Assembly: GCA_964036045.1 (NCBI GenBank) | Contig: OZ038378.1 | Span: 158,596,001 to 158,660,000, forward strand | Direction: 5' to 3' | DNA length: 64,000 bases | From: Eutreptiella sp. 'Long Island Sound 2002' | Lineage: Eukaryota; Protista; Euglenida | Part shown: positions 18,988 to 27,006 of the stretch, piece after piece | Numbering within the stretch: position 1 is the stretch's first letter | How the letters are laid out: the number at the start of each line of letters is the position of its first letter | The notes under the pieces: model-generated | What the model saw: only the letters and a program-made list of their open reading frames with translations | The model's database searches: none | Told to the model about the DNA's origin: nothing | Made by a program: the position numbers and the translations under genes

Positions 18988-19983
18988 CTGGAGGAAAGAG
19001 GCAGGGCTACAACGGACTACGCAGCGGTTCCACAGGTCATTCTGGTATGCACAGGGGGTTGGCTAATGCACAGTAGCAGCACTCTGCTGACTTTGTGTAG
19101 CACGCCAGCACCCCCAACACACTTCATTTGCCTGCGGATAGTGTGTCCCAGCAGCAGTATGCCTATCTATGTATGAGGGGGGGTGGGGGGGGTTGGCACA
19201 AGGCCTTGGTGGTTGGCTCTGTTAGCCTGTGGCGGCGCCTATTGGCCTCTCGCCCTTGAACCTTCTGCTATGACAAGCAGGCATCCGCACTACTGCGGGC
19301 ATCCGCACTGCATGGGGGGGGAATCCAGAATGCAACTTCTGCCCATGGCGTCCTCCCCTGACGGCCTGATCAGTGCCCCGGTATGCGGTCATCACGAAGA
19401 CCCCAGGCTGGGAGGTGCTCACCACAACCAGCAACGTGAATGTCACACAAGGCCATGGGTGCTGTCTCACCAATGTGTGACTTGAAGGGGGGGGGGCGGG
19501 TTGGCCCATGTTCCATTGCTCCGACCGGACGGGTGGCGTTGTTGATTGCGAAATGCCGTTGCAGTGTCGGAGTGCTGTTCTCCTGGTCCCCACTGAACAC
19601 TTTGGCACTTATTCCTGACAGGGCATGGCCCAGAGGCACCAGCTGCCTTGGGGCACCGGCTCGGATGACTCTGAAGCCACCCCCGACCGCAAGGCACAGG
19701 TCCGATCCAAAGGCTGCTCTAACAGCGGGCAGTGGCGAAACAGGCACCGGGACATGGCAACAACTCAATGCATGCGCACGTACTACGCGGCGAACTGATG
19801 GTACCGTGCACAAACAGTCTATGAATTCTCTCCCACCCGAAACCTGGGCCCACGTAACATGCACATGTACGAGGCTCTGCATGAGATATGTACTCGGTAT
19901 GCCCGTGCGCAGGCACGAGGCTGCTGTGCCTGGCACTGCCCCAAATGGTGCAGCACGCTGGTTGCTGCGCTCTGCCACAAATA

Positions 19984-20226
19984 CCCGCTGCGGGATACGA
20001 GAGTTGAATGCTACACTGCTAAAGCAAGCAGGCGAGTGCAATACAACAAAGTCAGAACAAAAAGCTCTTCAGTGACATTGCCATAGGCGCCTTTCGCTGT
20101 GAAACAGAAGGTACCCCGAGGTACAGTGCAGATGGGGGCTCATTCCTGTGACACGCACAAAGCTACTCCTACTGAAATGTCGGACACACAAATCAAATAC
20201 ATCAGACCAACATCAGTGCACCCCCC
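19984..20226 (-). repeat. 3' pseudo-LTR (243 bp)
   Basis: Identical to 25369-25611 except one base (20096 G vs 25481 A); contains the ORF2 stop. Confidence 0.95.
20063..20098 (-). ncRNA. Hammerhead ribozyme core, type II permutation (3' pLTR copy)
   Basis: Sense sequence AGC-GAAA-GGCGCC-UA-UGGCAAUGUCA-CUGAAGA-GCU: all conserved core nucleotides present; stems I, II and III pair. Confidence 0.7.
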
Positions 20227-23200
20227 TCCCCCGGTGGACTCCCCAGCCCACCAACGCCGAGTTAGCCAGGGCACACAAGGTGTCGCCGTCTGCTGCCCAA
20301 TCACTGCACCACTCCGTACAGGGTCCCTCGTGTGGTACATGCCACGACGCATAGAAACCCAACCTCCATTCGGCCGTTCTGCGCAACCATCCCCACAGGT
20401 CAGCTACAGAAAAGGACATATCCTGTGGCAGGCGCCCTGTTATAAAACAAATCCACTGCACCGTCTTCGCAGTGTCCCAGGGTGTACGGGCGAGGACACG
20501 TACAGCGGCGCATATCATTGCACTGCGCACCACGGACACGGGGTACTGTGACAAAACCGCAAGCTGCATCCAGGCTACAAGGGAAAGAAGGAAACCTCCC
20601 CATGTGGCTACAGACGGCAGTGCATTGCACAGGGCCCCAATAAACGTGTTCGTGACCCGTTTCCGCGTGGTGGCCCAAAAACTCTGGAGAGGGATCCCCA
20701 TCTTTAAATTCCACTGCTTGCCCAGGGCATTTGGGTGTGCATGGGCCAACACGTCAAGAGACCCCAGATGCACGGAAATGCCCATTGCCGTCAGCGACTT
20801 GCGCATGCAAGCACCGGTACAGGGCAGGTCAGGGTTTTTCGACCGGCAGTCACATACAACTTTTAGGGACCACACCTCTTCAAGGACAGAACATACCGGT
20901 TTCATCACGTCGGTGGCCTCCGGGCCTTGTGACGCAACGACGAGGTTATCCCTAAATTGCTGGAGAGCAAACAGGGTGTCACCTGCAGACCACTGAACTA
21001 CCCCATCACTGGTTTTGGAAAACCGTCCCCACCTCCTCAACAGATCAACTCGCAACTTGCAACACCACACTGAGTGGAGGTCTGCGCTTTGCGCACTGAA
21101 AGACCCGCCCATGGGTATAGCTCCAGTGCGTCGCCACAATTCTCCCGCTGCCACCACCACATTATCCTGAGACAGGCTGAATTCTACCAAAGAAATAAGG
21201 TCATTCCTCGACAAAACATGAAACGTGCCCCGTTTACCTTCACCAGCCCTGTCATGTGACTTATTGGTTTTGTGAATGCTCCAGACCAGTGTGGTAGCCC
21301 TCCACCTCCTGCGTGTAGTGAGCCAAATGGCTGCGTCACGCATATGCTGCAGTACAGAGGAGGGTGGGATGACATTAAACTGCTCTTTGCAGTCTGCTTC
21401 ACCTATGAATTCTGCACCCCATTTTCCTAGTTTTTGCAGCCAGGCTCCCATATCCTGCAGGCGCAGAGTTAAAAAAGACCCGGGTATCTCCGCAGCCAGA
21501 GTACGCACAAACAGGGTAAATGCACGGGCCGCCACCCTCAGCTTCTGGCGACTAACAACAGGTGCTGCAGCAGCCGCAATTGGGCGCCATAGCACCTCCG
21601 CCGGCACCTGCGACTTGGCCTTCCCAATCAGGTACAAAAGGGCCAGCTTGCCCTTTGTTCCCAGCGCCCAATTATTTGTGGAGATTGCATTATGCAAATC
21701 TCGTAACACTTCAGGCATATCACGGGACTCACGTGTGTACCCCTGCTGAACAAGAAAATTTTGCAGTTCATCCCAGGCCCACCGTCGGCAAAAACCCCAC
21801 ATTTGGCTAGGCCCTTTATCAACAATCCGGACCACCGCCACTTGCGACAAGTCGCGTGCTAACATCTGTACACGACGCCGAAGTTCAGCCCCCTCACTGA
21901 ACTCACTACGGGGTAACAGCAAAGACACATGGTCGTCAGACAAGGGTGGAACACCAAGGACAGCAGCTAGCTGATGCAGACTTTTGATTGCACCCTTCCG
22001 TGACAGGTCCCCATTGCACGGCAAAGGGTCATTAGCCCTCAGGGTCGTGTCCAGGTGATCAATGCGCACAGGGAGCAAGCAAAAATGGCCCTGAACCCTG
22101 GTGACGTCGCCTCCCGCAGACCAAACAGACATATGGCTGGCAGAGCAAAAACAGGGCGGCCTGCCAGTCTGCACTCCCTGTTTATTGGCACCACTTTCAA
22201 AGGCTCGTCTAACAGTAAGTGGTACAGAGCGTACAACAACGATACGTGACAGAATAGCCTGTCGCTGTGCTAAGGAGAGGCCTTTACTGCGCACAAGTTG
22301 ATTTATAGCACGGGTAATATATGGTGTCTGTGAGGGCTTCAAATACGGTACAATAACAGGGGTAGTACGCACCAGGGGGATGTCCAAGTCTGTGGCAAGT
22401 GAAGTGAGTTCGTTGGAGATGGCCCGTTTTTTTGCGAAGTCGCCATCCTGTTGTGCTACCCTGATCTGTTCCAAAAGTTGTTGCAGGCGTTTAGACTTTT
22501 GGGCTGAGGGAGGACCCCTGTGGACATCAGCTGGCACCGCGGGGGCATTATCGTTTAATGCCCATCTTTTTAGCCGAAACCACCACTCTCGTTCAACGAA
22601 ACAACCTTCCACATCGTCACACACATACTGTAGGGGGATGGGAGTCCATTCATGCAGGCCCGTCTGGCGCAGCATTGCATGGAACCTGCTGTCTTCTGCA
22701 CCCTCTGTGGCAGTGGTTCCGTGTTTTCTTAATCTCTGGACGGGTGCAAGATGGGTTTTCCCCACGTAGACACAGAGCATATGGACATGCACCATGACGT
22801 ACACAAGTAAAACAGGTGGGGGCGTACCAAGCTGCCAACAACCTGTGTGGCTGAGGCCACGAATCAGCCGCAGGACTGGGTTTGTGTGGTAGGGTAAATG
22901 GGGGATGCGCTGTTGCACAATATTTGCCCACACACCAAGATTTGTCGCAGTAAGTGCACGCTGTGCGCCGTGTGTATACAGGCGTAATCTGGCGTCGCTC
23001 TCAGGCTCTCGAGACCACAGACGTGAAGTACCGCGGCGACGCGCTTTAAAGAAACAATGTAACCGACAGCGCTGGACGTCGGACAAAACTGACACTGCCT
23101 CTGGGGAACCATAAAGTAACCAACACTTACCCTGGAACTCGGCGCTGGCTAAGCGCGTCACTGAATGAGGGAGCAGTGGAGTATACTCAGGGTCGTCAGG

Positions 23201-23896
23201 AGACAGTAACCACAAAAAGCCCTGGTCGGGCATGGGGATAGGGGAATCACGTATATCAGGCAGGACAGCCAAAAAATGACGAGTACCCTCAGGTATCAAC
23301 TGGAGATTCTCCCATACAGGGTCCAAAGGGAGAGACACTGTAGAGCAGAGCGCAGGGCTATGCAACCATACATTGACTCCAGACAGGCATACCATGATGA
23401 ATCTCTGCACATAGGAAGGGGGACAAGGGAACAAAGGGGGAGGCGGATGTGCCTTCGCCACTAACCAAGACAGCGGTTTGGAAAAGGCAGCAGCCCGCAA
23501 CGACGCAACAGCAGCTTCAGAATTGAAAAGTAAAGCGTCAGAATATTCAGAGGCTTCCGAAAACATCCATAGCTTTGCTTGGTAACCTGAAATCTCGAAA
23601 TGGTGTTGCCATTGGTCTGGGGGGTAGTGGGGCAGTTGCAGTGGACGGTATGTGTCATGGAAATTCACAGGATCATGCAGGGCACATTCAACAATATGAG
23701 AAGCGAGTGCCATTTTTGACTCCAGGCGTTTGATTACCTCAATTGCCTCAACCAATTCCAAATCAGAATTGCCAGCATCCTCTATGGAGTGTGCATCGTG
23801 ATCGGAAAACTCTGGTGCAGCAGGACAGGCGATGACGGGAACGGGATTGCTACGGGCGCTTGGTTGATGCACGCAAAGATTTTCGTCAAGCTGCAC
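20213..23896 (-). CDS. PLE ORF2: GIY-YIG endonuclease, CxC linker, reverse transcriptase (1227 aa, no stops; frame open up to 24055)
   Basis: VYVMVH...VYVGKT...RLRKH (GIY-YIG); PPCFCS; EADCKEQF (motif A); GAIPMGGSFS (motif B); QFRDNLVV (motif C). Confidence 0.9.
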   Translation of the reverse strand: MQLDENLCVHQPSARSNPVPVIACPAAPEFSDHDAHSIEDAGNSDLELVEAIEVIKRLESKMALASHIVECALHDPVNFHDTYRPLQLPHYPPDQWQHHFEISGYQAKLWMFSEASEYSDALLFNSEAAVASLRAAAFSKPLSWLVAKAHPPPPLFPCPPSYVQRFIMVCLSGVNVWLHSPALCSTVSLPLDPVWENLQLIPEGTRHFLAVLPDIRDSPIPMPDQGFLWLLSPDDPEYTPLLPHSVTRLASAEFQGKCWLLYGSPEAVSVLSDVQRCRLHCFFKARRRGTSRLWSREPESDARLRLYTHGAQRALTATNLGVWANIVQQRIPHLPYHTNPVLRLIRGLSHTGCWQLGTPPPVLLVYVMVHVHMLCVYVGKTHLAPVQRLRKHGTTATEGAEDSRFHAMLRQTGLHEWTPIPLQYVCDDVEGCFVEREWWFRLKRWALNDNAPAVPADVHRGPPSAQKSKRLQQLLEQIRVAQQDGDFAKKRAISNELTSLATDLDIPLVRTTPVIVPYLKPSQTPYITRAINQLVRSKGLSLAQRQAILSRIVVVRSVPLTVRRAFESGANKQGVQTGRPPCFCSASHMSVWSAGGDVTRVQGHFCLLPVRIDHLDTTLRANDPLPCNGDLSRKGAIKSLHQLAAVLGVPPLSDDHVSLLLPRSEFSEGAELRRRVQMLARDLSQVAVVRIVDKGPSQMWGFCRRWAWDELQNFLVQQGYTRESRDMPEVLRDLHNAISTNNWALGTKGKLALLYLIGKAKSQVPAEVLWRPIAAAAAPVVSRQKLRVAARAFTLFVRTLAAEIPGSFLTLRLQDMGAWLQKLGKWGAEFIGEADCKEQFNVIPPSSVLQHMRDAAIWLTTRRRWRATTLVWSIHKTNKSHDRAGEGKRGTFHVLSRNDLISLVEFSLSQDNVVVAAGELWRRTGAIPMGGSFSAQSADLHSVWCCKLRVDLLRRWGRFSKTSDGVVQWSAGDTLFALQQFRDNLVVASQGPEATDVMKPVCSVLEEVWSLKVVCDCRSKNPDLPCTGACMRKSLTAMGISVHLGSLDVLAHAHPNALGKQWNLKMGIPLQSFWATTRKRVTNTFIGALCNALPSVATWGGFLLSLVAWMQLAVLSQYPVSVVRSAMICAAVRVLARTPWDTAKTVQWICFITGRLPQDMSFSVADLWGWLRRTAEWRLGFYASWHVPHEGPCTEWCSDWAADGDTLCALANSALVGWGVHRGRGVH

Positions 23897-25368: not shown

Positions 25369-25611
25369 CCCGCTGCGGGATACGAGAGTTGAATGCTACA
25401 CTGCTAAAGCAAGCAGGCGAGTGCAATACAACAAAGTCAGAACAAAAAGCTCTTCAGTGACATTGCCATAGGCGCCTTTCACTGTGAAACAGAAGGTACC
25501 CCGAGGTACAGTGCAGATGGGGGCTCATTCCTGTGACACGCACAAAGCTACTCCTACTGAAATGTCGGACACACAAATCAAATACATCAGACCAACATCA
25601 GTGCACCCCCC
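25369..25611 (-). repeat. 5' pseudo-LTR (243 bp)
   Basis: See 3' copy. Confidence 0.95.
25448..25483 (-). ncRNA. Hammerhead ribozyme core, type II permutation (5' pLTR copy; G10.1-U11.1 wobble)
   Basis: Same as 20063-20098, except C11.1 is U. Confidence 0.6.
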
Positions 25612-27006
25612 CCCTTGTCCTAGCTATGCAAAAGTCCCAAATTAATACAGTCCCTACGCCTACTGTAGCTTGGACAAGGGCGTAGCTTGCGCGACACACA
25701 TGAAACTACCGGCATGGTGAGCCTCAACCAGCATGACGAAGACGAGAGGACTCTGGGCTGAGCCGCTCACTGCTCGCTGCATGTTTTAGCATATACCGGG
25801 GTTTGAACCAGCGACCGATCGCAATGCCAATCCTCTGCGTTACTGTTCTACCCCATCGCACACCTACTTGCTGCCACTGGCCATAGGGGCGGTCCCCGCG
25901 TCGGTCCAGTCTCGTTACCAATCCAGGGGCTATGGGGGCACTGCAGCCCTCCAGCTGCTGCCCTTATGGCGCAGCTTGTGGGCGCTGAGTTGCTGTCACC
26001 GCGGTGGAGCCCTTCGCGGTCCCGTTCCTAATCCAGGGACTATGGAGGCACTGTAGCTACTCCCTGCCGCCACTGCCCACACGGGCAGCACCGTTGTGTG
26101 GCCCATTGGGGCCCGCACTCCCCCCAGTGGCCAAGGGGGAGAACGGGGGGGGGGGGGCTAAAGCGGCACTCAGAGGTCGCCAGTCCGCACCGTGGCACAC
26201 ACTTGAGCGGGCAGCGAGTGGTGAGAGGCTCACACCCGAGTCCCATGGCCACGGAGAGCGCGTGGCGGCTAAAGCGAGGGAAACTGAGTGACCGGACGAG
26301 GATGGTCCCGAGTGGCCCCAGGAGCGACCCGCCTGGATGGGCAGGGGCAGTCATTTGCACGGCGATGGAGGCTGCAGAGCAGCAGGTGGCGCCTGCCCGT
26401 GTGGGCACAGAGGGATGAGGGCGAACAAGGCCCAGAGCGGCCTCAAACCTCGCGCCCCATGCCTTGGGCCTTGGGCGCCGCGACGAGGTGGGGCCACGGG
26501 CCGGTTGCGTTCCAACCAACCAATCAAGCCCCCCCCCCCCCCCCCCCCTTCAAGCCGCGAGGCGGGTGCGGCTGATGCAAGAAAGGGGGATATGGTGCAC
26601 AAATATCCCCAAAATCAGAGCTATGTGGGTTCAACTGGGCAAACACTCACAACAAATGTGTCCATGACTCTATGTAACTGGCGAATTTGTCACCAAACCC
26701 ATGTCTTATGTGGCCGCACTACATTTGGTACCGAATTAAATTAGGTCCCAAATTAATACGGTCCCTATGCCTACTGTAGCTTGGCCATAGAACAGTGGAA
26801 AGGTCAGCAATAGGTCCCCACCGACAGACCTATGCCCTCAATCAGCAAGTATCACGCGGCGGAGCCGCGGCAAACATTGTCCCATCTGTCCAGCGAAGCG
26901 CCACAGCCCTCCTTCGGATACGGCGCCGGAGGCGCCGCCACAGTTCTTCAGGATAGGTCAGGTCGCCCTCCCTACCCTCAGCAGGGCGTAGCTAGGACAA
27001 AGGGGG
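25606..27006. mobile_element. pogo-family MITE with nested insertions
   Basis: Ends (C)nTTGTCCTAGCTATGC...GCGTAGCTAGGACAAAGGGGG; 25615-25715 and 26586-26784 match the intact copy at 59463-59833. Confidence 0.8.
26785..26982 (-). mobile_element. 3'-end fragment of a LINE related to 31565-34642
   Basis: Shares GGTCCCCACCGACAGACC and GATACGGCGCCGGAGGCGCCGC with the 3' UTR at 31565-31700; splits CCTACTGTAGCTTGG from GGGCGTAGCT. Confidence 0.75.

Follow-up and report, generated by a model that had tools for sequence, protein, structure and literature searches.

Hammerhead ribozymes are a hallmark of Penelope-like elements (PLEs). The mini-hammerheads of canonical PLEs carry a palindromic helix III through which they are thought to act as dimers, and in vitro they cleave poorly and only in the dimeric form (PMC4209133). 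Their helix II is large and closed, their helix I is open, and a nucleotide is found between positions 9 and 10.1. In the Penelope element of D. virilis, the end of an intron abuts the open helix I, and the spliced and unspliced RNAs bear different hammerheads (PMC4209133). In the literature that we searched, hammerheads of type II are common in bacteria and occur in some archaea, and the hammerheads of eukaryotic repeats are overwhelmingly of type I. The stems II of natural hammerheads are commonly as short as 2 bp, one tested construct had a 1-bp stem II, and bacterial type II hammerheads with short stems II are supported by a pseudoknot between loop I and the tail (PMC3088659).

The survey of endonuclease-first PLEs by Craig et al. 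2021 reported that canonical hammerheads are lacking from Naiad and from most Chlamys elements; its searches used the CUGANGA-spacer-GAAA order and relaxed type I descriptors, and yielded eight 'half-core' cases, of either side (PMC8557442). Both the dimeric action through a palindromic helix III and this lack of hammerheads had been stated in an earlier note on the present DNA, and both agree with the published accounts. The reported absence had questioned the importance of the ribozyme for such elements. Here, we analysed a window of 64,000 nt (the whole stretch of DNA under study) from the euglenid Eutreptiella sp. 'Long Island Sound 2002'. The endonuclease-first PLE group represented in it keeps the full hammerhead core, in a permuted order that would escape the published CUGANGA-then-GAAA searches. 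If Chlamys and Naiad elements from other hosts possessed the same permuted motif, the lack reported for them would be accounted for. The locus also extends endonuclease-first PLEs to euglenids and, the motif being placed at a spliced-leader (SL) acceptor that has been used, it ties a ribozyme motif, trans-splicing and retrotransposition together in one 60-nt region. Neither Euglena PLEs nor Euglena hammerheads were the subject of any paper that our literature search retrieved.

An endonuclease-first element and its pseudo-LTRs

The element lies on the minus strand. Two direct repeats of 246 nt (family D1, 99% identity) flank an ORF of 1227 codons, and the following features were assigned, the RT motifs by eye.

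19984-20229, minus strand: 3' pseudo-LTR, a direct repeat made of the last 17 nt of the ORF and the 229-nt 3'UTR
20213-23896, minus strand: uninterrupted ORF of 1227 codons
20945-20956, minus strand: RT motif FRDN
21104-21118, minus strand: RT motif IPMGG, which reads IPMGG..SAQSAD
21389-21403, minus strand: RT motif GEADC
21578-21589, minus strand: RT motif WRPI
21812-21820, minus strand: DKG motif in the ORF
22145-22153, minus strand: CxC motif in the ORF
22697-22804, minus strand: GIY-YIG domain, a weak Pfam match
25369-25614, minus strand: 5' pseudo-LTR, a partial upstream copy of the ORF end and 3'UTR, with its 5' edge within a G-run

The GIY-YIG domain occupies residues 365-400 of the ORF and is followed by a P-x-C-x-C link, the DKG motif and the RT-like motifs. 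Its Pfam match is weak in the window ORF (E 0.066); five of seven homologues match, the best with an E value of 0.0025. Six homologous ORFs, of 43-56% protein identity, share P-x-C-x-C, DKG, WRPI, GEADC, IPMGG..SAQSAD and FRDN with the window ORF. Searches of the ORF against Pfam and PDB profiles did not recognise the RT, and the AlphaFold model of the ORF was poor (pLDDT 46) and lent no support to a fold search. The GIY-YIG domain placed N-terminal to the RT motifs, together with the CxC link, bears out the earlier assignment of the element as an endonuclease-first PLE. The same architecture, pseudo-LTRs (pLTRs) and insertions in (C)n/(G)n and (CA)n/(GT)n microsatellites characterise Chlamys and Naiad (PMC8557442). 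The element is Chlamys-like in having no CCHH finger before GIY-YIG and in keeping DKG, a likeness of architecture and motifs. It differs from the published Chlamys and Naiad elements, for which canonical hammerheads were reported absent and neither a euglenid host nor SL trans-splicing is mentioned (PMC8557442). Every relative compared in this work belongs either to this genome or to a single ENA assembly, whose organism is the same or a sister one; beyond these, protein searches yielded fragments only.

The 246-nt repeat is a pseudo-LTR of the Penelope type, arising from a partial upstream copy. Since the motif described below is located in the 3'UTR, it is present in both pLTRs. The two copies differ at two places only, 20096/25481 (position 11.1 of the motif) and 20227/25612 in the poly-G at the edge of the repeat. 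Position 11.1 is thus the sole difference within the 243 bp that had been delimited previously. At least 1643 candidate copies of the pLTR were counted in the genome.

Several peculiarities of the element were also observed. RT motif C (20945-20956) reads FRDN and not the usual ..DD; all seven homologues have the F, the R and the final N, and they differ solely at the third residue, which is D in six of them and N in the seventh. Despite FRDN, recent activity of the element families is suggested by near-identical pLTRs and by copies numbering in the thousands. Inverted arms made of G-runs and C-runs (19481-19527 and 26508-26554) bracket the whole insertion, and a 43-nt direct repeat (25634-25676, 26745-26787) is found just upstream of the 5' pLTR. 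The arrangement of these arms and repeats suggests insertion into a homopolymer microsatellite, with neighbouring repeat copies.

A hammerhead core in type II order

On the minus strand, positions 20098-20063 read AGC-GAAA-GGCGCC-UA-UGGCAAUGUCA-CUGAAGA-GCU. The second copy (25483-25448) is identical save for U at position 11.1 (AGU). The motif and its surroundings comprise the following elements.

20044-20065, minus strand: GC and U-rich tail, conserved with the motif and complementary to GAAAGGY
20063-20098, minus strand: hammerhead-like motif, copy 1, in type II strand order
20098-20096, 20095-20092 and 20091-20086, minus strand: segments AGC, GAAA and GGCGCC of copy 1
20085-20084, 20083-20073, 20072-20066 and 20065-20063, minus strand: segments UA, UGGCAAUGUCA, CUGAAGA and GCU of copy 1
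20066-20072, minus strand: CUGAAGA (C3 to A9), in which N7 is the sole variable core base
20073-20083, minus strand: stem I hairpin UGGC-AAU-GUCA
20085-20092, minus strand: stem III, the 8-nt palindrome AGGCGCCU, able to pair only between two copies
20084/20083, minus strand: predicted cleavage site between A17 and U1.1 (hammerhead numbering); 25469/25468 in the second copy
20097-20098, minus strand: AG trans-splice acceptor (25482-25483 in the second copy), positions 11.2 and 11.3 of the earlier note
20099-20111, minus strand: pyrimidine tract CCUUCUGUUUCAC upstream of the acceptor
25448-25483, minus strand: hammerhead-like motif, copy 2, with U at 11.1, the majority form of the family

The earlier note had given the letters and coordinates of the motif correctly at both sites. 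It had also described the difference at 11.1 as a change from C to U that retains a G-U wobble; the change and the wobble are there, although C is not the norm. Among 32 copies of the family, U occupies position 11.1 in 25 and C in only three, so that G10.1-U11.1 is the family norm.

The likelihood that the motif arose by chance was evaluated with a type II descriptor that called for GAAA, an A..U stem III, then H17, a hairpin with 3 bp or more, CUGANGA and flanks that pair over 3 bp or more. Over the 64-kb window it retrieved these two sites only. The expectation from Markov shuffles, per 64 kb and on both strands, was 0.075 loose hits, and 0.01 if stem III was required. In the 2.28-Gb genome, the pattern GAAAGGNNCCTA-N9-25-CTGANGA occurs 2068 times as compared to two for the reversed control, and the GGCGCC class with N7 other than A adds a further 851 occurrences (none in the control). 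The motif is short, and the Rfam hammerhead models, including Hammerhead_II, gave no match at the gathering score in the window and none at E<=10 in 19900-20300, as would be the case for a chance resemblance or for a palindromic signal acting at the DNA level. Set against these numbers, and against a covariation score (see below) that was reached by none of 500 shuffles and by no slid control, such an explanation carries practically no weight, and chance resemblance is effectively ruled out. A metagenome pattern scan for the permuted motif returned two chance hits, both inside ordinary genes.

The motif was found 3' of the ORF in families that are only 43-56% identical in protein (L031, L032, L033), and also in more divergent families, intact in L080, decayed in L081 and truncated in L079. 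Outside the motif, the UTRs of different families cannot be aligned. Because homology between families in the assembled contigs breaks at 20044-20051 and at 20099-20102, the motif and its short tail form an island of conservation. Throughout 23 family-level variants, G12, A13, A14, A15.1, U16.1 and A17 are invariant, and so are C3, U4, G5, A6, G8, A9 and G10.1. The only core base that varies is N7, which is A, U, C or G depending on the family. In hammerheads, N7 is the single core position that is left free. Judged from these alignments, an invariant core with a free N7 is the conservation signature of a hammerhead. The order GAAA - stem III - UA - stem I hairpin - CUGANGA is kept in every family and corresponds to the type II topology, stem III being 'closed' only as a loopless palindrome.

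Stem I differs between families in its sequence, length and loop while its pairing is kept: the variants include UGGC/GUCA, UGAC/GUCA, UGGUC/GGCCA, UGGA/UUCA and a long bulged GCC.../...GGC. Its three outer pairs are paired in 98.6% of cells, and all three show changes on both sides. Stem III is paired in 97.8% of cells. Between A15.1 and U16.1 it consists of the 6-nt palindrome GGCGCC or GGUACC, with a compensatory change from CG to UA at the centre, and once of AGCGCU, where GG..CC has changed to AG..CU. A search for other helix III palindromes gave decayed single copies only. These data uphold the earlier description as regards the hammerhead core with its strands ordered as in type II, the hairpin of stem I and the palindrome of stem III: over the 23 variants the core is conserved and both stems covary. 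The 3-bp stem II of that description is not conserved. Just 56.5% of its cells pair, and whole families lack it: AGC/GCU pairing holds in the GGCGCC families of the same register as the window element, while ACA...GCC, UCA...GUC or GCA...CCA is read in the GGUACC families and in several of the GGCGCC ones.

Possible substitutes for stem II were looked for. Upstream hairpins, UGGC boxes and the U-tract of the SL offered no partner that was consistent across families. A pseudoknot between loop I and the 3' tail was sought by inspection, and no complementarity conserved across families was seen, only L031 offering 4 bp. The conserved U-rich tail can pair with GAAAGGY in 79.7% of cells, without covariation. 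As this pairing is also the predicted minimum free energy fold of a 56-mer monomer, it may represent an inactive alternative fold. The hammerhead fold of the monomer has a nearest-neighbour energy of +0.9 kcal/mol. The palindrome-mediated dimer of the 56-mer is predicted at -38.5 kcal/mol against -23.2 kcal/mol for two monomers, a gain of about 15 kcal/mol.

Like the PLE mini-hammerheads (Cervera and de la Pena 2014, PMC4209133), the motif occurs in both pLTRs, has a minimal core with a conserved G10.1, has a helix III that is palindromic at 15.2-16.2 / loop 3, is very short or lacks a loop and thereby implies dimers, and is represented by many covarying families in one genome. Unlike them, it is permuted, its stem I is a closed hairpin, its stem II is open and nearly absent, it has no nucleotide between 9 and 10.1, and its host element is endonuclease-first. 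The permuted order and the absence of a closed helix II show that it is not a member of the type I PLE mini-hammerhead family. The same permutation and the tolerance of short stems II are found in the type II hammerheads of bacteria, archaea and phages (Perreault et al. 2011, PMC3088659; Rfam Hammerhead_II). The motif is distinguished from bacterial type II by having no Rfam match and no detected loop I-tail pseudoknot, by a stem III that is a loopless palindrome rather than a hairpin, and by its setting in a eukaryotic retrotransposon.

Additional elements accompany the motif. Upstream of the acceptor, at a distance of 15-30 nt, there is a hairpin that covaries, GUACC-UCGG-GGUAC in the window (20111-20124) and CUGUGG-CCCACC-CACAG or CAGUGG...CCACUG at GGUACC-class loci such as L033 and L060. 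Downstream, at 10-22 nt from the motif, a conserved YUGAY box is present. Another family, GAAAGGCGCCUA-UUGGCGUCGGACAUGCUCUGUUUGUCUUGU-CUGAUGA-CCAA-CUGACGA, was found at L076, at L080:4302-4360 and in many other genomic places. It has no clean stem I and contains a second CUGACGA; the 9-nt box AUCCUCGUC found upstream shows complementarity to GACGAGGAU, a sequence overlapping the second core. This family may adopt a different fold.

A spliced-leader acceptor at the 5' edge of the motif

The AG at 20098-20097 is directly preceded by the pyrimidine tract CCUUCUGUUUCAC, and comparable tracts are found in other families. In several short copies, located after a (G)n or (GT)n microsatellite, TTTCTGAGTGTCTATTTTTTTTCG is directly joined to (Y)GAAAGGCGCC. 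The leader on these copies is that of the Euglena gracilis SL primer ACACTTTCTGAGTGTCTATTTTTTTTCG (PMC5654406). The fusion GAGTGTCTATTTT...-AAAGGNNCCTA is present in 251 genomic copies and in none of the control. Seven of the 251 carry the stem I of the window family, with junctions in which ...TTCG is joined to CGAAAGG or to TGAAAGG. The leader is therefore fused exactly at AG 20098-20097, which identifies this dinucleotide as a trans-splice acceptor that has been used. The acceptor had gone unnoticed in the earlier note, and the Euglena leader marks the host as a euglenid. From the structure of these copies, reverse transcription has proceeded to the 5' ends of RNAs that were SL-capped and uncleaved.

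Two acceptor registers were distinguished. The first, to which the window family belongs, is AG followed by YGAAA; the spliced RNA keeps Y11.1 and G11.2 and loses A11.3, which leaves a stem II of 2 bp. In the second, G12 itself serves as the acceptor G, and C11.1-G12 is restored by the terminal CG of the leader. Because position 11.1 is A in the genomic sequence of this register, the G10.1-C11.1 pair exists only after trans-splicing. The situation recalls Penelope of D. virilis, where a splice junction likewise abuts the open helix, with an SL trans-splice site here in its place.

The block could be seen as mainly a trans-splicing signal, an acceptor with an exonic enhancer that captures the spliced leader, its likeness to a hammerhead being secondary. 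The AG and the pyrimidine tract stand directly 5' of the block in nearly all families and in two registers, and the 251 fusions fall exactly at the acceptor. This would however leave the covarying hairpin, the covarying 6-nt palindrome and the two core strings at hammerhead spacing without a reason, as we know of no need for any of them at trans-splice acceptors. Furthermore, the motif persists in copies that lack the AG (e.g. L070, L071). We regard this reading as very improbable; the block is very probably a selected RNA element derived from a hammerhead.

Short insertions of 140-190 nt, made of the SL, the hammerhead motif and the end of the 3'UTR, were observed in (G)n/(GT)n microsatellites (L034, L037, L053, L078), and such SL-headed copies occur among the 251 fusion places. 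Judging by their structure, these insertions resemble SINEs and would be retrocopies of 3'-terminal RNAs that had been trans-spliced. Of the class C/D motifs, about one in four may belong to this short, SL-headed type.

Proposed dimerisation and cleavage, and derived repeats

The combination of the invariant core, stem I and the palindrome leads us to favour, with some reserve, a selected minimal hammerhead of type II order whose cleavage would depend on dimers. Dimer dependence is probable by analogy with the canonical PLE hammerheads. We infer dimerisation, catalysis and the purpose of cleavage as follows. The palindrome AGGCGCCU would be the only strong intermolecular contact and would pair two copies of the motif, carried either by two RNAs or by the two pLTRs, 5385 nt apart on one read-through transcript. 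Since stem III is a loopless palindrome of 8 nt, the active core would form only when two copies pair. Each GAAA strand would then face the UA-stem I-CUGANGA strand of its partner, and the core would be closed by the vestigial stem II (0-3 bp) or by the CG of the leader. Two forms of RNA are expected because the 3' strand of stem II coincides with the SL acceptor: the unspliced RNA would carry an AGY leader, and the leader of the SL-capped form would end in ...UUUCG. The terminal CG of the leader would supply G11.2 in the window family, and C11.1 and G12 where the acceptor G is G12. In the monomer, the U-rich tail would provide a competing 'off' fold. Cleavage after A17 would detach the capped leader together with 12-13 nt, or would trim a tandem transcript to unit length.

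As a proxy for the 5' ends of cleaved RNAs, we counted the genomic copies starting at U1.1 within the copies that bear the exact 20-mer of the window family. There was no excess of copies starting at the predicted cleavage site. Only 14 exact-20-mer copies lack A17, most of them by A17G point changes, and at most three to four are possible true junctions; cleaved RNAs thus left no visible 5'-end footprint in the genome, in contrast to the 251 copies that descend from uncleaved, SL-capped RNAs. If the cleaved RNA was circularised, or if copying did not extend to its end, this result is neutral. Two estuary metatranscriptomes contain the element family, as assembled contigs in which read ends are not visible.

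The same data can be read in terms of a hammerhead derivative that is no longer catalytic and serves in RNA dimerisation, in recognition by the RT at the 5' end of the SL-capped RNA, or in both. The GGCGCC or GGUACC palindrome would then resemble a retroviral dimer-initiation site and would promote template switching, giving rise to pLTRs and tandem arrays. A vestigial stem II, SL-fused copies that come from uncleaved RNAs used as templates, the lack of copies beginning at the cleavage site, a palindrome that is the strongest predicted interaction and the existence of tandem arrays of motif-bearing units would all fit with this scheme. It does not explain why C3-A6, G8, A9, G12-A14 and A17 are invariant around a free N7, nor why the geometry of U16.1-A17 and U1.1-A2.1 has been kept. 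We therefore consider a loss of catalysis to be possible but rather unlikely, and retain the dimer-dependent hammerhead as the preferred reading. A more elaborate proposal, which we put forward only as a doubtful one, is that SL trans-splicing and the permuted dimer-dependent hammerhead constitute one coupled device, with the acceptor built into the ribozyme. If so, the capped leader could be removed again by self-cleavage 12-13 nt downstream, the device would switch the RNA between a capped mRNA and an uncapped template of unit length or able to circularise, and it would be the source of the SL-headed SINE-like and of the tandem retrozyme-like derivatives.

Head-to-tail arrangements were seen in the estuary metatranscriptome contigs. 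One joint links 20102 back to 20052 and repeats the hammerhead block of 51 nt in head-to-tail order; its shorter side measures only 31 nt. A second contig joint (20238/25368) links the 3' end of one pLTR to position 20238. These joints may correspond to genomic tandems, to assembly paths through repeats or to RNA forms.

Short non-autonomous units, such as the SL-headed copies of 140-190 nt, and tandem arrays of units with one hammerhead each recall the non-LTR retrozymes and tandem hammerhead repeats of animals. Unlike here, where the units are known from genomic sequence, retrozymes carry type I hammerheads and have documented circular RNAs. The short units and the arrays are probably mobilised by PLEs. 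The array at G000:C1:154845699-154862403 (L082 = C1:154852400-154856000) comprises 20 or more units that measure about 716-1486 nt. In each of them, one permuted hammerhead motif, whose stem I UGACAUGUCA is itself a 10-nt palindrome, is combined with the end of a PLE ORF, its 3'UTR and an unrelated short element that is present twice and delimited by G-runs. In its layout, this array resembles a retrozyme.
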